This document shows positions 11,920 through 61,966 of a stretch of DNA of 64,000 nt, piece after piece. Origin of the DNA: Macrostomum lignano (lineage: Eukaryota); NCBI GenBank assembly GCA_002269645.1, contig NIVC01000500.1, positions 186,001 through 250,000 of the forward strand. Direction: 5' to 3'. Every line of letters begins with the position of its first letter. Position 1 is the stretch's first letter. The notes under the pieces are model-generated. The model worked only from the letters and a program-made list of their open reading frames with translations, searched no databases and was not told the origin of the DNA. The position numbers and the translations under genes were made by a program.

Positions 11920-21928
<10,009 letters not shown>

Positions 21929-30840: not shown

Positions 30841-32312
30841 CTACTTATCGCCCCCATTCAGTTTGTCGCTTTCACTGTCAGAGAAAATCCCTTTTAAAGG
30901 ATAGTTGGGATCTTCAGTCGGATCAAAGCTGACTGACTGACTGAAACGCAGGCATCGCGGCTTCATCTGCTGCTCGTTGGCAACCTTTCTAACCAGGGCC
31001 TCGCGGTCCAGGCCATAGACGGTGAGGTTTTTGGAGTTGAAATTCTCCGCATTGTCGGACTCCGAGGGCTTCGGCGCACATGTTTTCTGCCGTTTAACAG
31101 GTGACAATTTTCGCTCATCAACAGGGCTTGTACAGTTCTTTGAGGCGTGCCTCCGACTCTTCCACCGTTTCAAATCGATCTTTAAGTTTGGCCAATTCCA
31201 ACAGTCTGTCAACAGCTGCTTGGCCACCAGAACCGGCGGTGCGATCGATGCTGAATATTAACGGCGGCACTGTGGACATCAGCATGCGCTGGTGCAGCTG
31301 GCTTCTGAAATGTCGATAAATTTGTCGATAGAAGCGTCGATAAATATGTCGATAAAAATGCCAATAAATATGTTGACAGAATTGTCGATAAATATGTCGA
31401 TAGAAGTGCTGGTAAATTTGTCGATAGAAGCGTCGACAAATATATGGACATAATTGTCGATAAATATGTCGGTAGAAATGTCGATAAATATGTCGGTAGA
31501 AATGTCGATAAATATGTCGGTAGAAATGTCGATAAATATGTCGGTAGAAATGTCGATAAATATGTCGGTAGAAATGTCGATAAATATGTTCATAGAAGTA
31601 TCGATAAATATGTCAATAGAAGAGTCGATACATGCCACTAAATATGTATCTTTTGTGTCGAAAAAAAGTCGCTAAACGTGTCGATAGACATGACTAAAGA
31701 CACAAATACTGAAGCAGAGCAAAGCAATTAAAGCAAACGCACCGAATTTCCGACGCATTGGAAAGCAGAGCGGCGTCAATCTCGGAGTCCAGTTCGGGAC
31801 TGCCTGTTGTCATCCAACTGACTTGCACCTTGGTCAGGTTGATGTCCATTCTCACCTGAATAAAATAGGAGATAGGTAGCCGTATCTTCAAAGGCATAAA
31901 CTGAGGATCTGGGAGGCTGGCCCAGCAACTGAGGATCTGGGAGGCTGGCTTAGCAACTGAGGATCTTGGGAGGTTGGCCCAGCAACTGATACTCTGGGGA
32001 CAGCGAGTTTCACACCTTGCTAATCTGAACACTCTGCAAGCAGCGACCAACGCAGCCGGAGATGAAGACCTCCTGCAGGGCATTCCTCAGCATGCTGGAC
32101 AGCACAATGCTGCGCTTCTCCTTCTGCAAATTGACCGGTCGGTTGCGCAAAGCCGCCTTCTCCATGTCTGACTTGTCTTTCCGCTGCTTCTTCCGCTCCA
32201 GCCACTGGTGGTCTTCGAACCAGGGGTGCCTGCAGTTCACAGCGGTGCTGGATTTGAATATTATCTGTGTCTATCTATCTATCTATTTATCTATTTGTCT
32301 ATCTATCTATCC

Positions 32313-32343
<31 letters not shown>

Positions 32344-32795
32344 CATCTATCTGTCTATCCATCTATCTGTCTATCCATCTATCCATCTATCTGTCTATCC
32401 ATCTATCCATCTATCTGTCTATCTATCTATCTAGCTATCTGCCTATCCATGCTTGGGCGCAACCTAGGGATTCACCCGGCCGTTTCTATTGGCAACACAC
32501 ACATGTAAGTCGCTATTGGACAGAATAGTAGTCACGTGACTGCTCTCAGCCAATAGCGACTTACATGTGTGTGTTGCCAATAGAAACGGCCGGTGAATCC
32601 CTAGGTTGCGCATGTATCTGCCTATCAATCTATCTTATGAATTCACTTATCAATTTACACTTACTTTTTAACAGATGACAACTGGCGCGCACAACCGCTG
32701 ACGCCAAGCGCCTTGCAGAACACCGCAGTAGCAGCGCATGCAGAAGGCACGGATTGCAGCAAGTGCCGATAGAAACTTGTCAAAGTATAATGAGA
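30841..32795 (-). CDS. RBFA: Mitochondrial ribosome-binding factor A; no in-frame genomic ATG in the first exon, and an apparent 1-nt frameshift in the last exon
   Basis: Exons 32795-32665, 32247-32016, 31855-31743 and 31304-30841. The translation LRNALQEVF...VQISK|[14 protein letters not shown]...[12 protein letters not shown]|[20 protein letters not shown]...AVDRLLELA follows the RbfA fold. The +1 frame continues into VYGLDREAL, which resembles the C-terminal GIDHEAL motif of animal RBFA. Exon 1 reads like a mitochondrial presequence. Confidence 0.8.
31312..31690. repeat. 24-bp minisatellite (RBFA intron 3)
   Basis: TGTCGATAAATATGTCGGTAGAAA variants. Confidence 0.9.
31903..31990. repeat. 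28-bp minisatellite (RBFA intron 2), same family as 37690-37925
   Basis: GAGGATCTGGGAGGCTGGCCCAGCAACT, about 3 copies. Confidence 0.9.
32457..32611. repeat. Near-perfect inverted repeat (62-63-bp arms, 30-bp spacer) in RBFA intron 1; probable palindromic MITE
   Basis: GCGCAACCTAGGGATTCACCCGGCC...CGCTATTGG (32457-32519) mirrors CCAATAGCG...GGCCGGTGAATCCCTAGGTTGCGC (32550-32611) with a single 1-nt bulge. The spacer contains the palindrome AGTCACGTGACT. No clear TSD. Confidence 0.9.
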
Positions 32796-32879
32796 CTGCA
32801 AGACAGGTAAATAAATATACGTGTAGAAAAAATTATTGTACTATCTGCAATAAGTTAAAGATAAGATAAGATAAAAACG

Positions 32880-33120
32880 ACGACAGGTAAAGATAACGTT
32901 CAGGTGAGATAAGTCCGGCCAGCAGATAATTGGCAGGTGAGATAACAGTCAGGCTGGCAGATAATTGGCAGGTGAGATAACAGTCAGGCTAGCAGATAAT
33001 TGGCAGGTGAGATAACAGTCAGGCCAGCAGATAATTGGCAGGTGAAATAACAGTCAGGCCAGCAGATAATTGGCAGGTGAGATAACAGTCAGGCCAGCAG
33101 ATAATTGGCAGGTGAGATAA
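32880..33120. repeat. 35-bp minisatellite
   Basis: GCAGATAATTGGCAGGTGAGATAACAGTCAGGCCA. Confidence 0.92.
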
Positions 33121-33609
33121 GATTAATCAGCTGGAAAGGAGTTAGCCTTCTAAGAACAAAAATGGGTAATTTGGCTTATTTTTAAATATTCTGAACAGAA
33201 TCTGAGTCTGTGGGCTCAGGGCAAGATTATATTCTTAATTAAAATATGCTATTCAAATTATGTATTGGTTTGAAAACTTGATGGAAACCTAATTAATAGC
33301 ACCATTGGATTAGTGTAAACGCTGCTCAATCAATTACAAACAGAAGCTAAAAATAACAATTTTAAATCGCATGCATAATCAAAAAATGAATAATTTCAAT
33401 TTTACAAAATATTGAGGCAAGTAATGCTTAGGGAAATTACTCAGGCACATTGTTGCAACACACGAAATGCAGACAGGATTATCAAAACCCAGTAAAATTA
33501 ATTTGAGTCAAATAAATAAAACACAAAAATATTGATCAATTTGCAGTAAAATTAATCTGATTAGATTTTTAGAGTATTGAGAACTACCTACCTATTACTA
33601 AGGAAATTT

Positions 33610-34220
33610 AATAACTGCCAAACAGCTACTTCCGATATGCTAACAACTGCCAAACAGCTACTTCCGGTATGCTAACAACTGCCAAACAGCTACTTCCGAT
33701 ATGCTAACAACTGCCAAATAGCTATTTCTGGTAGGCTAATAACTGCCAAACAACTACTTCCGATCGCTAATAACTGCCAAACAGCTACTTCCGATCGCTA
33801 ATAACTGCCAAACAGCTACTTCCGATCGCTAATAACTGCCAAACAGCTACTTCCGATCGCTAATAACTGCCAAACAGCTACTTCCGATCGCTAATAACTG
33901 CCAAACAGCTACTTCCGATCGCTAATAACTGCCAAACAGCTACTTCCGATCGCTAATAACTGCCAAAAAGCTACTTCCGATCGCTAATAACTGCCAAACA
34001 GCTACTTCCGGTATGCTAATAACTGCCAAACAGCTACTTCCGATCGCTAATAACTGCCAAACAACTACTTCCGATCGCTAATAACTGCCAAACAGCTACT
34101 TCCGATCGCTAATAACTGCCAAACAGCTACTTCCGATCGCTAATAACTTCCAAACAACTACTTCCCATCGCTAATAACTGCCAAACAGCTACTTCCGGTA
34201 TGCTAATAACTGCCGAACAG
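33610..34220. repeat. 31-bp minisatellite
   Basis: AATAACTGCCAAACAGCTACTTCCGATCGCT. Confidence 0.95.
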
Positions 34221-34345
34221 CTTTTAATGGCATTTTAATTAGAATGATGCATTCAATTGATGAAAGTTTGAAACCATTCTGTACTATAAAATTGCAGAGA
34301 AAATGAATAATCAATCATTGAAAACCAGTAGATCCATTGTACACA

Positions 34346-37300
34346 TCAAACTGGCTTAGAAGAAAAGTCCATAGTTAGCAGATAAGCCGGTATAGCGTCG
34401 CTGTCGCCATTCAACGGCGTCATTGGCAACGTGGACGCCGAGGGGGCGGCATGGATCGGCGAAGAAGAGGAGGAACTTCCGGTGCCAAAAAAGCGTTGGA
34501 AACTGCAACAAATGACAGCAATATATTAGCGATGATAAAAATGCGGCAACACAACCTTCCTAACGAAGCATTATAAATGTAAAGTAAAAAAACTACTATA
34601 AAAGCAAGAAGGCCAATAAATACCGAATTTTTTTAAGAGTTACGTTCGTAGTTTATATTTATAATGATCTGTGACTACCTGTCCATTCAGGTCTTCTAGA
34701 AGCTGCCCTTCTACCCCCCCCCCCCAATCTCAGATAGAGCAGCCCTTCTACACTCCCTAACCTCAGGTAGAGCAGCCCTTCTACCCTCCCCTAATCTCAG
34801 GTAGAGCAGCCCTTCTACCCCTCTCTAATCTCAGGTAGAGCAGCCCTTCTACCCTCTAATCTCAGGTAGAGCAGCCCTTCTATCCCTCCCCAATCTCAGG
34901 TAGAGCAGCCCTTCTACCCTCCCCAATCTCAGGTAGAGCAGCCCTTCTACCCTCTAATCTCAGGTAGAGCAGCCCTTCTATCCCTCCCCAATCTCAGGTA
35001 GAGCAGCCCTTCTACCCTCCCCAATCTCAGGTAGAGCAGCCCTTCTACCCTCTAATCTCAGGTAGAGCAGCCCTTCTATCCCTCCCCAATCTCAGGTAGA
35101 GCAGCCCTTCTATCCCTCCCCAATCTCAGGTAGAGCAGCCCTTCTACCCTCCCCAATCTCAGGTAGAGCAGCCCTTCTACCCTCCCCAATCTCAGGTAGA
35201 GCAGCCCTTATACCCTCTAATCTCAGGTAGAGCAGCCCTTATACCCTCTAATCTCAGGTAGAGCAGCCCTTCTATCCCTAGTGACATAAAACAAGAGTGA
35301 TAATTACACTCGAATTCATCAATAAAATATACCAATCATTAAAAGACGGCGACTAACTACTGCTCACCTACTGAAATGCAACAGATATTTATTTATATTT
35401 ATAAAAATGGAAACTTTAAAAAGTGCATTCGGTATTAAAAAAGTAACAGTAAAAAATTATTAAGTTACTGGCAACAGTTAAAAATTGTTTCACACACAAT
35501 AGAAAGACTGGTCAACAAAGTGGAGTGCTAAAAATGCTAAGACTATAAAATCACACAACAAACAAGCGTGTAAAAATTTCACAACTAAAAAATTATTCGT
35601 CAAAAAAAGTACATAGCAAACTTAGGCCCAACTTCGGCGACGCCTTAATCTCCTGCGCAGGTGGCAAATCAGGCGCACTATTCTGCAATAAGAATTAGTT
35701 AATTGATAGTAATAATATTTACTAACTGATTCGATACATATCGGTATAGCGAAATCATGTACGAAAGTATTGGTCCGTATTGTTGATTTTTGAAACTCTA
35801 GTAGCGTAATAGTTATTGAAATCATATTTGTGATCGAATTAAAATAGATTTTCAATTTGGCCACTTTTAGAATATTTCGATACATATCGGCAAAAACTAA
35901 AATTAATTATATTTTATAATAATATAATAATATAATTATAATAATAAAAGATTATTTATAGCGTTTTTCGACACATATCGGCTAAAATTTAATAAATTGA
36001 TCAATAAATATTCCTCCAAACATTTTGGCTAAAAAGTATCATTTATACTCTTTTTCGATACATATCGGCTAAAATAAGAACGATCATTTATCAATTTAAC
36101 TAATTAAGACTGAAATACCGGTCAGAGAGAAGAGCTTTAGCATAGTGTGATGATAAGCATTAAAATTCGAACGGAAAGTTTTTCAAATAAAATTGCTCAT
36201 CATACTACTTAACACAATTTTGTATTAGCAAATAAATACTTACAAGTATTTAATGCCTAAATCGCTGCTGTTGCTCTTTTGATTAGAAGCATCTCCGTTT
36301 AAACCGCCGCCGTCATTTTTTTCGGCGCCCGACGCTTTGCAATCGCGTTGCGCAGGCGCCGGCGAGGCTTGAGTAGACGTTAAACCGACGCCGGGGTCCC
36401 CTCCTAGTAACGGAGCAGACGGTAAAGCTTGATAGAAACTTTGCGACGAAATCACTTCGAAACCGGATAGCGGCGTCGAATTCGATGGATCCTCCTCGAT
36501 AGAGGATGTCTGCCGTGCAGCGCCCTGGCGGTAAGCCTCTGCTAGTTCCTCTTCTGCTTCTAATAGGCGAGCTTTGAGTTCGTTTCGCTCGGCTAGGACG
36601 GCCCGAAGCTCGGCCAGGGTGAAACGAGGCCGGTTTGGATCGAGAGAGTTCGAAGATGCGTCTGAAACCTGCTGCTGCTGCTCCCACTGCTTCTGCTGCT
36701 GTTGTTGCTGCTGCTGCTGCTTCTGCTGCTGTTGTTGCTGAGGCTGCTGTGGCGAAAAAGACAGTTGGCTCAATGGGGAGGCCTGCAAAGTGTTCGTTAA
36801 GACTATCACATATTATATATAAATATGTATTTTATAGTATTTGCGGTTTTAGAGCATGAGTGAGATGGATGGATTGAAATATTAAAGAACAAAAAATGAA
36901 TGAAATTATAATTAGGGCAGCAAAGATCAAAGAATGAATGAGATTATAATTGGGGCAGCAAAGATCAAAGAATGAATGAGATTATAATTGGGGCAGCAAA
37001 GATCAAAGAATGAATGAGATTATAATTGGGGCAGCAAAGATCAAAGAATGAATGAGATTATAATTGGGGCAGCAAAGATCAAAGAATGAATGAGATTATA
37101 ATTGGGGCGGCAAAGATCAAAGAATGAATGAGATTATAATTAGGGCGGCAAAGATCAAAAGGCAAGTAGCGCAAGCGCACTCACAGCCATATCGGCATCT
37201 CCGCGATGCAGTTCAGGCTGACAGTCGCTGCTGTCAGAGTCGGATCGACCATCACAGAGTTTATCTTCCAAATCGCCCACGCCACCGCCGCCGCCGCCGT

Positions 37301-38248
37301 GCACAGACTTGCTAAGCCGCTTCATCAGATCGGCATTGAGGCTGGCTAGGCGGTCACTCTGAGCTTGCAGGGCCTCGCAGTCGGCCCGGCTGTTGGCCAG
37401 TTCGCGCCTCAGAATTCGAGTCTCGTCGCGCTGGGCGTTTAGCGCCGATTTCAGCCTGGCAACGATGAGCATCTGCTGCTGTTGTTGACGCTGCTGGACA
37501 GGCGATGAGGTTGCGGAACCGGCCGACTGCTCGGAGGCCGAGGATGAGTTCCCTCGGCGAGCTTCGCTTAGCGCCTGTTTGAGACTGCTGTTCTCTTCGC
37601 GAAGGTGCTGCAGCTCGCGGCGCCACTCCTGATCGGCCTGGGAGATGAGGAATATTCTCTTTGGGTGATTCAGAATGCCAGAATACCTGTCTGGGGATCT
37701 GGGAGGCTGGCCCAGCAACTGAGGATATGAGAGGCTGGCCCAGCAACTGAGCGATCTGGGAGGCTGGCCCAGCAACTGAGGATATGGGAGACTGGCCCAG
37801 CAACTGAGCGATCTGAGAGGCTGGCTCAGCAACTGAGGATCTGGGAGGCTGGCCCAGCAACTGGGGATCTGGGAGGCTCGCCCAGCAATTGAGGATTTGG
37901 GAGGCTGGCCCAGCAACTGGGGATCATGCACTTAGTGTGTAAACGCCGAGAGAAGACACTCACCTGCTCCATTTCCCTCTCAAAGCGGCCCCTATCAGTG
38001 AGGCGGGCAGCCCTCTCCAGCTCCAGCTTATCAATGCGCTGCTGCAATAGCACTGCCTCATCAGCCGCAGCCTCAGCCCTACTAGTGAGCAATTCCAGAT
38101 TCTCCAGAGCTGAAATCACTTTAGGCATCAGGCCTGACAAGGATTCTGGCCCATGCTGATCAATGAGTATTTCAAACTCTTTGCCAATGACTGACGCCAA
38201 GTCATAGACATCAGTGATTGATTGGATATTAGGCTTGGATAGTGGCAT
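34346..38248 (-). CDS. RILPL1: RILP-like protein (RH1 and RH2 domains), ~477 aa
   Basis: Exons 38248-37964, 37637-37185, 36782-36244 and 34502-34346 (phases 0, 0, 2). RH1: DVYDLASVIGKEFEILIDQHG...LMPKVISALENLE. RH2: DPNRPRFTLAELRAVLAERNELKARLLEAEEEL. The paralog assignment (RILPL1 versus RILPL2/RILP) is uncertain. Confidence 0.87.
34700..35280. repeat. 29-32-bp minisatellite (RILPL intron 3)
   Basis: AATCTCAGGTAGAGCAGCCCTTCTACCCTCCCC variants. Confidence 0.95.
36895..37160. repeat. 38-bp minisatellite (RILPL intron 2)
   Basis: AAAGATCAAAGAATGAATGAGATTATAATTGGGGCAGC. Confidence 0.95.
37690..37925. repeat. 28-29-bp minisatellite (RILPL intron 1)
   Basis: GAGGATCTGGGAGGCTGGCCCAGCAACT, about 8 copies. 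Confidence 0.93.
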
Positions 38249-39181
38249 TGTAATCTGTAAATTTTTAAAACTTTACAGAAAAAAACAGTTAAGTCTTTTA
38301 TTGAGGCTAGTGGAAAACTTTGCTAGATAAATGATCAATATAATGAATAAAATTCAAGCAAAGATTAATCAATATAGATATTCAGTAAATACTAGTAAAC
38401 TCTCTATAAACTAGCTTAACACTAAACACTTGATACTAATCTTCCTAAACACAATTTTTTTTAGATTTTTAATAACCCATCTGTTGATCATCTATTAAAC
38501 AATGGAAAAAAACATCATCCATTTAAAAAAATTTTGCCACCTATTAAAATATGCTGATTGGAAAATAGCTAAAATTGAAATTGTCTTTCTATTTTAATGT
38601 AGAAATATAATGGGTAGCCATATTTTTTAAAATATTGTTGTGTTAGACAATATAAACATACAAAAATGGTATCTCACTATAATTTTTATGACTTGCAAAC
38701 ATTATTTTTATTATGAAAATAAGCTTCACAATGTATAACTAAATTTTTTTTCAAAAAGTCTTGTCTGCCAATAGAAAAAAAGCAGTAGATAATTTGACTA
38801 TATTTTAGTCTAACAAATAAAATTTCTAACAATGTTTTTAACAAATGAAAAAAGTAAGACAATTATTGCTATTGCCATATTAAATTTTTGTTAATGATAA
38901 TAATTTTATAAGTAACATTTATTAAGCACTATGCGATATATTTACTTTAAGTTTAATATAAAACTAGACTAAGAAATAGCCAAGTTTAAGCATAGGCCTA
39001 CTTGAATAGGTAGACCCTTAACAACTCACATTTGAACTCACATTTGTTCATGGGCAAAATTTACCTGGTCCTATTGTCTATAGATGGCAAATATTGGTAA
39101 GAAAAAGCTTAGCATACAAATCTCAATCAATAGGCAAATCTGAGACTCAATAGGGCCTAGGCAATACAATATATTTGTAGG

Positions 39182-40904: not shown

Positions 40905-45823
<4,919 letters not shown>

Positions 45824-58358: not shown

Positions 58359-61300
58359 ACGCATTTGCTTCCCCATTGATATTCGAATTTTAACAAAAGC
58401 AAAATACTAAAAGCAACCAGTAGCATGAAACTTTACACAGAGTAAACTGCAACCGTGAAACGACTATTGGTCAAGTTTCAGCTCGATATGTAACTTTGGC
58501 TCTGAGCAGGAGCGATTTTCGATGTGTTCCATTTAAAATACATGTGATTCCAAAATTCATATTGATATTCGAGTACAGGTACTTCTGCTTCACTGATCTT
58601 GACGAAACTTTACACAGAGTAAACTGCAACCGTGAAACGACTATTGGTCAAGTTTCAGCTCGATATGTAACTTTGGCTCTGAGCAGGAGCGATTTTCGAT
58701 GTGTTCCATTTAAAATACATGTGATTCCAAACAACAACAACAACAACAGAGTACGCTGCCAGTTCGCGAAAGCAGCGTCAGATGGCGCGCTTCGAAGCTT
58801 GGGCGCGAACAAAAGCCGCACCGCCGGCAGAGTCCGGGGCGCCGGCGTCAGCCAGCAGACAGTCGACGTAGCGCCGAGTCCTCGCCTGTCCCCCCCGGTA
58901 GGGTGCCTGCAACGTAAGTAGCAGCACCTCCTGCACCGGCTCCGGACAGTAGGCCTCGGCGCGGATGACGTGGCCTGCCAGCTGGAGTCGCCGACGGCGC
59001 AGCAGATCGCTAGGACGGGCCAGGCCGGCGCGATGATAGAGCGCCGTGTTGGTGACTCGCTCGTTGCCGATCTTGAAGGCGGCGCGCAGCAGGCCAGCGT
59101 GCGCCGCGTCGACTTGAGCCTCGAGCGAGTCTATCAGCGTCCAGGTCTCGGCGTTGTATAACAGGACGGTCTCGATCACCGCCTGGAACAGCGCCGCCCT
59201 CTGGCGGTCCGGTAGGGCCTCGGACTGCAGGACTGACCTTATAGAACGAAAGGCAGCCCAGGCAAGTCCTCGGCGACGCCGAAGATCCTCGCGGACGTCG
59301 GGAACCAGACCGCCGAGGTAGACGAACTGCTGACATCTTGGAAGCTCACTCGCCTGTCCGTCAGCGCCTCGGCAGAAGATTGCAGCCTCGGTGTCGTCCG
59401 GCACGCATAGCACGACGGTCTTCTGCGTGTTGACCACCAGGCCGACGCTCGCCGCAACGGCAACCAGTCTATCCAGCTGTCGTTGGGCGCCCTCGACGGT
59501 CGAGGACAGCAGGGCGAGGTCATTGGCGTAGCCAAGCACGCTGAGCCGTCTCTCCGGTTGGCGTCGACCCACGCGTCGCCGCAGCAGGAAGCCGTCGTCG
59601 TTGGAAGGCAGAGCAGTCCGTAGCACCCAGTCAAGCACCAGAATAAATAGGAACGGCGCTAGCGTATCTCCCTGGAGCACCCCGGAGGATGTCTCGAAGA
59701 AATCCGATAGGCCGTCCGGTGTTGAGACAGCAGCCGTCGTGCCGTGGTACAGCGCCATGACAGCAGAAATCAGCAGCTCTGGCACGTTGTACGCACGGAG
59801 CACCTCTGGGAGCGCGTCCCTCACGACCGAGTCGAAGGCCTTTCTGAAATCGACGAAGATCAGGATCAGGGTCAACTGGCGGATGCGCGCCTCCTCGATG
59901 ACTCGCCGAAGAGCCAGGATCTGCGTCACTGTGCTGCGATGGGGCCGGAATCCGTTCTGCTCAGGCCACAGGTACGGGTCCAGCACAGTCTGTAACCGCG
60001 ATAGCAGCATGCGGTTGAACAGCTTCGCGGCGCAGGACTGTAGGCAGATGCCTCGATGCTCCTCGAGCTTGGTGGTGCCCGGCTCGGCGCCACCTCACCG
60101 GAAAGCACGCGGTTCATCACTCTGGCGACCTCAGTGGCCACGCAGTGGATCCGCAGCGCCTCGGTGGGCACCTCGTCCGGACCAAGCGCTTTGCCGCAAG
60201 GCGACTGCCGAGCGAACTTCACAACGTCGGCTGTGCTGACTGGGGCAACGTTGAAGCTCTCCTCCGCCGGCAACGGCGTCTCCGGCGGCAGCCACAGATT
60301 TTCTGGAAGCGGAGGGGCGGCGCGTTGACAATGACGGCGAAGAACTCGCGCAGCTCGTTCCTGCGCTCATCCGGAATGTCGCCTGCCTGGTTGAGCGCGA
60401 TGCGCCGCTTTCGCCCAGAGTGTTGATGACGGACCAGGCCACGCGCCCTCTGGCATCGGGCCCTGCGGCAGAGACGGCTTGGATGGCGTCATCGACAGCG
60501 GACTGCTGCCGCTGCAGGTAGACAGCCGCCAGAGCCTCCTCCTCCTCGCGAGTTTGCCGCCCACTCAGACGGAGCCTCTCCAGATCTTCCCTCGCTTCGT
60601 CGATCGCGGGGTCGTCATGCCAGACCGCTGGGCCGGTCGCATCAGCGGGACTGCTTGCTCCGCATCGGCTCGAACTGCAGCGCTCACCTCCGCGTACTCG
60701 GCTCCTCCACGCTTGTCGCCCAGCGCAGTGACAAAGGCACCGGCAAAGTGACGCCGCGTCTCGGCGTCCCTGAGCGCGCGGTAGTAGCGCCGCGGTGGCC
60801 GCTTTGGCGGACGGTAGAGCGGGTCCCGAAGCCGAAGGTCGCAGATGAGCAGCCGATGGTCGGACCGCAGAGCCAGCGGCGTAATGGTGCGGCAGTTGGT
60901 GACGCGGCGGCGCACACGAAAGCGCAAAAGCACGTGGTCGAGCTGTGCCAGCCTCCGCGTAGCGTTCCGGCCGCGCGCGTTCCGCCGCCTCCGCTTGCAG
61001 CCCACGAAGGTCGCGAGCCTGCCCGGTGACTTGCGGAATCTGGTGTTGGCCGACACCATGTCCTGTCTCTCCAGGAAGTCCTCTAGCGCTCCGGTGTTGC
61101 CGTTCTCGCGCGCTGTCACAAACAGCGATCGCTCGGACCTACGCAGAACTGCGTTCAGGTCTCCGAGAATGACCACTGTGTCACGTTGCGCCATCTCCTC
61201 CACCTGTACTCGAATATCAATATGAATTTTGGAATCACATGTATTTTAAATGGAACACATCGAAAATCGCTCCTGCTCAGAGCCAAAGTTACATATCGAG

Positions 61301-61966
61301 CTGAAACTTGACCAATAGTCGTTTCACAGTTGCGGTTTACTCTGTGTAAAGTTTCGTCAAGATCAGTGAAGCAGAAGTGCCTGTACTCGAATATCAATAT
61401 GAATTTTGGAATCACATGTATTTTAAATGGAACACATCGAAAATCGCTCCTGCTCAGAGCCAAAGTTACATATCGAGCTGAAACTTGACCAATAGTCGTT
61501 TCACGGTTGCAGTTTACTCTGTGTAAAGTTTCGTCAAGATCAGTGAAGCAGAAGTACCTGTACTCGAATATCAATATGAATTTTGGAATCACATGTATTT
61601 TAAATGGAACACATCGAAAATCGCTCCTGCTCAAAGCCAAAGTTACATATCGAGCTGAAACTTGACCAATAGTCGTTTCACGGTTGCAGTTTACTCTGTG
61701 TAAAGTTTCGTCAAGATCAGTGAAGCAGAAGTACCTGTACTCGAATATCAATATGAATTTTGGAATCACATGTATTTTAAATGGAACACATCGAAAATCG
61801 CTCCTGCTCAGAGCCAAAGTTACATATCGAGCTAAAACTTGACCAATAGTCGTTTCACGGTTGCAGTTTACTCTGTGTAAAGTTTCATGCTACTGATTGC
61901 TTTTAGTATTTTGCTTTTGTTAAAATTCGAATATCAATGCGAATATCAATGGGGAAACGAATGCGT
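58359..61966. mobile_element. Foldback/Mutator-like element: long inverted arms built of 177-bp tandem units, enclosing the RTE fragment
   Basis: The left arm 58359-58731 and right arm 61202-61966 are reverse complements, and both begin ACGCATT(T/C)G(C/T)TTCCCC. The unit period is 177 bp in both arms (58427/58604; 61204/61381/61558/61735). The flanks CCTCAGTCT (58350-58358) and TCTCAGTCT (61967-61975) form a 9-bp TSD with one mismatch. Confidence 0.78.
58732..61201 (-). mobile_element. 5'-truncated, frameshifted RTE-clade non-LTR retrotransposon (APE fragment plus RT)
   Basis: ORF 60565-61203 holds the C-terminal half of the endonuclease (VVILGDLNA, LDHVL, SDHRL). ORF 58778-60010 holds RT motifs (QNGFRPHRST, FVDFRKAFDSV, GVLQGDTLAPFLF, YAND in place of YADD, VNTQKT, YLG). 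Frameshifts lie between the ORFs. A (GTT)n 3' tail sits at about 58732-58748. Confidence 0.9.

Follow-up and report, generated by a model that had tools for sequence, protein, structure and literature searches.

A probable spliced-leader source of the initiator AUG for RBFA in the flatworm Macrostomum lignano

Trans-splicing reportedly gives rise to mitochondrial and cytosolic variants of thioredoxin glutathione reductase in E. granulosus, as Agorio et al. are said to have described in 2003. More generally, all reported flatworm spliced leaders (SLs) end in AUG (PMC12582326), and this AUG can act as an initiator: in the work of Cheng et al. (2006), as it is cited in PMC9851317, the SL AUG lies in frame in 28% of the trans-spliced mRNAs of S. 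mansoni, and over 40 cDNAs depend on it. In E. granulosus, 143 out of 187 SL clusters reach full length only if the ATG of the SL is counted in, and the in-frame SL transcripts include those for COX6B and for a subunit of NADH-ubiquinone oxidoreductase (PMC3510090). M. lignano possesses a single SL of 35 nt, CGGTCTCTTACTGCGAAGACTCAATTTATTGCATG, bearing ATG at its 3′ end (PMC8629364). This terminal ATG was treated as a start codon by Wiberg et al. too (PMC10468722). The top motif at 21,754 trans-splice sites of this species is [T/C]TNCAG (PMC8629364).

The gene for ribosome-binding factor A (RBFA), which takes part in mitoribosome assembly, is in M. lignano probably a further well-formed member of the SL-AUG class known in flatworms since 2006. 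Just as in other flatworm mRNAs of this class (“slORFs”, PMC9851317), the SL ends in AUG, acceptor and main ORF agree in phase (0), a genomic AUG is lacking nearby, and an ortholog-like N-terminus is obtained only via the SL AUG. Unlike the cases of Cheng et al., which come from Neodermata, RBFA belongs to the free-living, early-branching Macrostomum and is known from genomic sequence and annotation. With the in-frame SL transcripts of E. granulosus it has in common a nuclear gene, a mitochondrial protein and an ORF in the frame of the SL AUG (PMC3510090). Those cases, in contrast, rest on sequenced SL-cDNAs, and an SL-dependent presequence is not their point. In the case of E. granulosus thioredoxin glutathione reductase, trans-splicing reportedly decides whether a mitochondrial signal is present, as is proposed here for RBFA; the reductase has alternative 5′ ends and two isoforms, whereas RBFA has a single acceptor and no second isoform documented. 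Phytochelatin synthase of S. mansoni was considered as an SL-dependent mitochondrial precedent and rejected, since its authors found no trans-splicing. No published account of an SL AUG start was found for RBFA.

The window analyzed here is a stretch of 64,000 nt of M. lignano DNA. The GenBank locus of PAA82055.1 (BOX15_Mlig018635g3; GCA_002269645.1, NIVC01000500.1) is its identical reverse complement, such that position x of the locus corresponds to position 42784 − x of the window. A protein search with the spliced RBFA as a query returned only proteins of M. lignano. Two further copies of the locus, L001 and the diverged homeolog L002, were used for comparison. The coordinates are given in Table 1.

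Table 1. Features of the RILPL-RBFA region in window coordinates
Feature	Position	Strand	Remarks
RILPL exon 1	37964..38254	minus	acceptor tttacAG/ATTACAATG; own ATG at 38248
RILPL alternative proximal 3′-terminal exon	35622..35682	minus	ends ..LIVRLICHLRRRLRRRRSWA-stop; GenBank model of this copy (P0007)
RILPL distal 3′-terminal exon	34346..34502	minus	..F FQRFFGTGSSS...SKPV-stop
RILPL-RBFA gap (outron/intercistronic region)	32796..34345	minus	1,550 nt; 834 nt in two minisatellites
Proposed SL trans-splice acceptor	32796..32815	minus	polypyrimidine tract and TTGCAG; AG at 32797-32796
RBFA exon 1	32795..32665	minus	131 nt, phase 0 start, SHYTL...SSVK and 2 nt
RBFA exon 2	32229..32016	minus	RBFA domain begins here; earliest genomic ATG in frame (residue 66)
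RBFA exon 3	31855..31743	minus	
RBFA exon 4 to the premature stop	31304..31118	minus	...LKELYKPC-stop; equals GenBank PAA82055.1 (P0004)
Out-of-frame RBFA C-terminal tail	30841..31124	minus	5-nt deletion between 31125 and 31124

Exons 1–4 of RBFA, when joined, form a 645-nt frame that is open from its first base. A first-pass annotation, made from the sequence alone, had described exon 1 as starting in phase 0 right after an acceptor, and this was confirmed (AG at 32797-32796, context tttatttacctgtcttgcag/TCTCATTAT; the exon ends at the donor AAAAA/gtaagt). The 43 residues given as the translation of exon 1 are correct to the letter; Met, Asp and Glu do not occur among them. Of the description as Ser/Ala/Arg-rich, “Arg-rich” was overstated, since Arg, Lys and His occur only twice each in this exon. 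The next in-frame ATG does lie well inside exon 2, as had been noted: the first genomic Met of RBFA is residue 66, 22 codons into this exon. The placing of the RILPL stop 1.55 kb upstream on the same strand was likewise correct (the stop ends at 34346, 1,550 nt away), and the gap is indeed largely minisatellite, since the arrays at 33609-34222 and 32901-33120 together make up 834 nt, or 54%. When the RBFA frame is followed upstream of the AG, it runs into a TAG 15 codons before it, with zero ATG between; in L002, the upstream in-frame stop is found at 22 codons, and there is likewise zero ATG between.

We propose that the RBFA pre-mRNA (BOX15_Mlig018635g3) is trans-spliced with the SL at the AG preceding exon 1. 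The 35-nt SL, whose published sequence (...TTGCATG) bears out the earlier expectation of a leader ending in AUG, would be joined to the TCT at 32795 to give an mRNA with AUG-UCU-CAU... and a protein starting M-SHYTL.... The initiator Met would then be supplied in trans by the SL and not by the RBFA gene. The predicted SL-exon junction reads TTATTGCATG followed by TCTCATTAT[AT]CTTTGACAAG, while the unspliced sequence across the acceptor is CTGTCTTGCAGTCTCATT. The RBFA acceptor TTGCAG fits the [T/C]TNCAG motif, and the M-SHYTL... start, already suggested in the first-pass annotation, is supported by the phase, by this acceptor motif and by the 5′-partial annotation in three copies. On evidence that is indirect but converges, we put the probability that the SL supplies the RBFA initiator AUG at about 0.8; ribosomes would be expected to use this AUG for initiation. 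The substrate would most likely be a transcript of RILPL, which lies 1.4–1.55 kb upstream, and RBFA, in which RILPL would be trans-spliced at 38254 and polyadenylated near 34220. From an RNA that is not trans-spliced and retains the outron, translation could start only at Met66, which would yield RBFA without a presequence. Joining of the SL at exon 2 was rejected as out of frame (ORF 32020..32205).

The gene models available for M. lignano bear on this proposal. The Mlig_3_7 annotation was built by RNA-seq mapping, with SL reads extracted and the SL trimmed, and its “transcriptional units” were cut at SL and poly(A) peaks by the TBONE pipeline (PMC5730564). The RBFA copies PAA82055.1, PAA79056.1 and PAA82023.1 are all three labelled “partial” (5′-partial CDS) in GenBank, and in none of these models, based on RNA-seq and SL reads, is an upstream exon annotated. 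In L002, the RBFA CDS (P0003) begins SHYSL and has as its first base the one that follows the AG; this is the expected look of a transcript after trimming of the SL including its ATG. In this copy and in L001, the GenBank CDS starts not at the AG but at LTSFY (32783), 12 nt inside exon 1. Base 10 of exon 1 differs between the copies (A vs. T), and we infer that the LTSFY start may have arisen by clipping of the mapped transcript at this mismatch.

Further searches for the SL and its junction gave negative results. No SL RNA gene was detected in the window at up to 3 mismatches, and an exact pattern scan of metagenome contigs gave no match to the SL-exon junction. The supplementary files consulted (Wudarski 2017, Grudniewska 2018, Ustyantsev 2021) have no entry for Mlig018635, for Mlig000198 or for RBFA. 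The M. lignano RBFA protein clusters comprise NCBI and UniRef members only, with no Logan/RNA-seq-derived entry. The UniRef models A0A1I8GXT0, A0A1I8HLY7 and A0A1I8HYS2 (P0002, P0005 and P0006) read into the outron (VLQSHY...) and omit part of exon 4; all three are named “AGC-kinase C-terminal domain-containing protein”, which is ill-suited to a protein with an RBFA domain.

For the coding status of exon 1, an open frame alone is not beyond chance, as a stop-free run of 43 codons is expected in about 13% of cases and phase 0 in 1/3; that exon 1 is nevertheless real is shown by its similarity to human RBFA and by where indels do and do not occur. The best solved relative of M. lignano RBFA is the human “ribosome-binding factor A, mitochondrial” (7pnx_a, E=7.7e-9). 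The alignment pairs query residues 20–195 with chain residues 33–208 and continues past the junction of exons 1 and 2, taking in KKxxW[FY]E, a conserved stretch that translation from Met66 would delete. The RBFA domain itself (Pfam PF02033) occupies residues 88–178, with 41.2 bits vs. a gathering cut-off of 34.7. An exhaustive HMMER search yielded 26 remote homologs, and in every one of them 40–105 residues precede this domain. For other flatworms, that search gave remote unnamed homologs only, and a profile search gave no flatworm matches.

The comparison with L002 revealed 4 substitutions and no indels in exon 1. At the amino-acid level these are three conservative changes and one synonymous change, and the comparison therefore does not demonstrate purifying selection. 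Exons 1–3 taken together differ by 8 substitutions and again by no indels, vs. 5 gap events in the unique gap DNA (488 nt) and 2 gap events in the 62 alignable nt immediately 5′ of the AG. The indels thus begin directly upstream of the AG and are absent from exons 1–3, which places the coding/non-coding boundary at the AG.

These data also bear on two other ways in which RBFA translation might begin. In one, exon 1 would serve as a 5′UTR only, with the start at Met66 and RBFA either devoid of a presequence or imported otherwise. This reading can point to Met66 as the first in-frame genomic AUG, to an RBFA domain that stays intact from there, and to the mostly non-synonymous character of the homeolog changes in exon 1; we nevertheless consider it very unlikely, since scanning ribosomes would reach the in-frame SL AUG at the 5′ end before Met66, the human alignment runs through exon 1 and the segment that would be lost, every remote homolog has its residues ahead of the domain, and exon 1 is free of indels. 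In the other, the ATG would come from an unannotated cis-spliced upstream exon joined at 32795. In flatworms, cis- and trans-splicing often use the same acceptors (PMC12582326), and some weak candidates, e.g., ATG/GTGCTA at 33305-33303, are conserved at all three loci. Still, among the 12 phase-0 candidates of the type ATG../GT present in the 2.8 kb upstream, not one has a GT[AG]AG donor, in agreement with the earlier statement that no convincing ATG-bearing cis exon is to be seen there. The longest of them (33450..33406, donor GTAAAA) is frame-broken in L002, where a 1-nt insertion shifts the frame into a stop. Moreover, three independently annotated RNA-seq-based models are all 5′-partial and contain no such exon, so that a cis-spliced source of the ATG appears very unlikely as well. 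A cis fusion of RILPL to RBFA via the phase-2 RILPL donor was also tried and rejected, as it meets a stop after five codons.

Under the preferred reading, in which the AUG comes from the SL, the N-terminus of RBFA may be interpreted further. Asp and Glu appear only after residue 49, and every window of 40 residues that starts beyond residue 10 contains at least one of the two. The first 45 residues carry a net charge of +5 (Arg/Lys). By composition and by analogy with orthologs, the N-terminal 40–45 residues, in which Ser, Ala and Leu abound and the charge is mildly basic, may be read as a mitochondrial presequence. In the protein, the presequence would precede the conserved KKxxW[FY]E stretch, with the RBFA domain after it, and the product would be predicted to enter mitochondria. 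The sequence RQLS at residues 38–41 matches, as RQL/S, the R-3 cleavage pattern and is a possible MPP R-3 site. One might go on to suppose that trans-splicing acts as a switch for the location of RBFA, such that the SL-capped mRNA would give the form with the presequence and the precursor a cytosolic Met66 form, but we regard this as improbable. If it were true, assembly of the small subunit of the M. lignano mitoribosome would be coupled to the SL trans-splicing capacity, which has been reported to be highest in neoblast genes.

The first-pass annotation had also suggested that RBFA is the downstream gene of an operon with RILPL. RILPL and RBFA are direct neighbors on one strand, and the gene tables of L001–L003 place no other gene between the two. 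The pair is flanked by opposite-strand genes, and any operon would therefore consist of two genes. RILPL has its own ATG, whose frame an SL AUG would share, adding Met-Ile-Thr (M-I-T-M-P-L). The RILPL proteins in GenBank are marked partial, and their CDSs start with ITM or TM. The distal exon chosen earlier for the 3′ end of RILPL is the one annotated in the sister locus (P0054), whereas in GenBank this copy of RILPL is modelled with its stop at 35622. The GI[KR]xFFQ motif, shared with a mollusc RILPL1, is present only in the distal exon and not in the proximal one. The distal exon is followed by two ATTAAA signals (34239-34234 and 34228-34223).

In the Mlig nomenclature, the prefix of a gene name denotes the transcriptional unit (Suppl. 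Fig. 5a, PMC5730564), so that a prefix shared by two unrelated genes means that an assembled transcript spans both. The names at this locus are BOX15_Mlig018635g1 for RILPL and g3 for RBFA, and those in L001 Mlig000198g2 and g3, respectively. In L002, RILPL bears the prefix of another transcriptional unit, Mlig023722. Co-transcription was thus assembled at two of the three loci, and the operon claim was supported: the shared unit prefix speaks for it, the split of L002 into separate units against it. The pair resembles described M. lignano operons (PMC5730564, PMC8629364) in lying on the same strand and in having a proposed SL acceptor at the downstream gene, a repeat-rich gap and a shared unit name. 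Operons in this species are defined by a repeat-adjusted intergenic distance of less than 1 kb, and their spacing has a mode of about 100 bp (Ustyantsev & Berezikov 2021, PMC8629364). According to our own repeat calls, which are not the authors' mask, the stop-to-acceptor gap minus tandem repeats amounts to 1,550 − 834 = 716 nt. This is below 1 kb and far above the mode; compared with the described operons, a spacing of 0.7 kb falls in the upper part of the accepted range, and one of the three loci is split. Both the 5′-partial CDS that begins at the acceptor and the cut made inside a common unit suggest that RBFA is SL trans-spliced as a downstream gene. True co-transcription of RBFA with RILPL seems to us somewhat more probable than its absence, and the gap would in that case lack an internal promoter.

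Alternatively, RBFA might have its own promoter in the 1.5-kb gap, with the SL replacing the outron and supplying the AUG, and there would be no operon. Only 40% of the trans-spliced genes of M. lignano are in operons (PMC8629364), the gap includes a unique, AT-rich stretch of 488 nt (33121-33608), the assembly of L002 put the two genes into different units, and their spacing is well above the usual one, all of which make a separate promoter a possibility to be taken seriously. We nevertheless hold it to be the less probable arrangement, since the common unit prefix at two loci requires an assembled transcript that spans both genes, the pair fits the published operon definition, and transcriptional units tend to split in repeat-rich intercistronic regions (PMC8629364), as the RILPL-RBFA gap is. 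A scan of the gap for sigma-70 promoters and terminators was disregarded as meaningless for a eukaryote. A different objection concerns this RBFA copy itself, which lacks the 5 nt GTCGC at 31125/31124 that both other copies contain. The deletion leads to a frame ending in ...KPC-stop, whereby 94 C-terminal residues including the YGLDREAL motif are lost; the conserved C-terminal extension [FY]G[IL]D..EAL is out of frame here and intact in L001 and L002. Otherwise this locus equals L001 in all eight segments compared, except for 5 substitutions that fall within the distal exon of RILPL or the next 123 nt downstream of it. Either the lesion arose very recently, in a duplicated chromosome, or the assembly is wrong at this point. 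One could argue that this copy is a decaying duplicate whose start anatomy carries no functional weight, so that only its paralogs matter: the loss of 94 residues with a conserved motif would be in line with this, and the near-identity to L001 is in keeping with the DV1 line, whose large chromosome was duplicated recently (PMC8629364). We find this doubtful, given that the deletion may be an error of assembly and that the same 5′ anatomy exists in the intact L001 and L002; the start-codon conclusion therefore carries over to those copies.

As regards annotation, the lack of an ATG need not make a gene model incomplete if the species practices trans-splicing. Adding the SL Met would correct the “partial” labels on the three M. 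lignano RBFA proteins in GenBank, as well as the outron-reading models in UniProt. RBFA offers a clean test case in a flatworm amenable to transgenesis; the gain lies in annotation and experimental convenience, and no new concept is involved.

Repeated sequences are prominent in and around the two genes. Intron 1 of RBFA harbors a 155-nt near-perfect palindrome (32457-32611), with arms of 44 nt and 20 nt that are 100% complementary. It is present in L001 and L003 and absent from the first 75 nt of intron 1 in L002, and it may be a MITE-like insertion. A 28-bp minisatellite (CTGAGGATCTGGGAGGCTGGCCCAGCAA) is common to RILPL intron 1 (37691-37925) and RBFA intron 2 (31899-31989). Minisatellites and (CTGT)n-type arrays are abundant in introns and gaps throughout the window. 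Elsewhere in the window, a 410-residue ORF on the minus strand (58778-60010) resembles, as judged by eye, a reverse transcriptase. Repeats are found near it at 58496-58921 and 61155-61817, with a tandem unit that encodes ALSRSDFRCVPFKIHVIPKF, and this ORF together with the repeats is probably a non-LTR retroelement.
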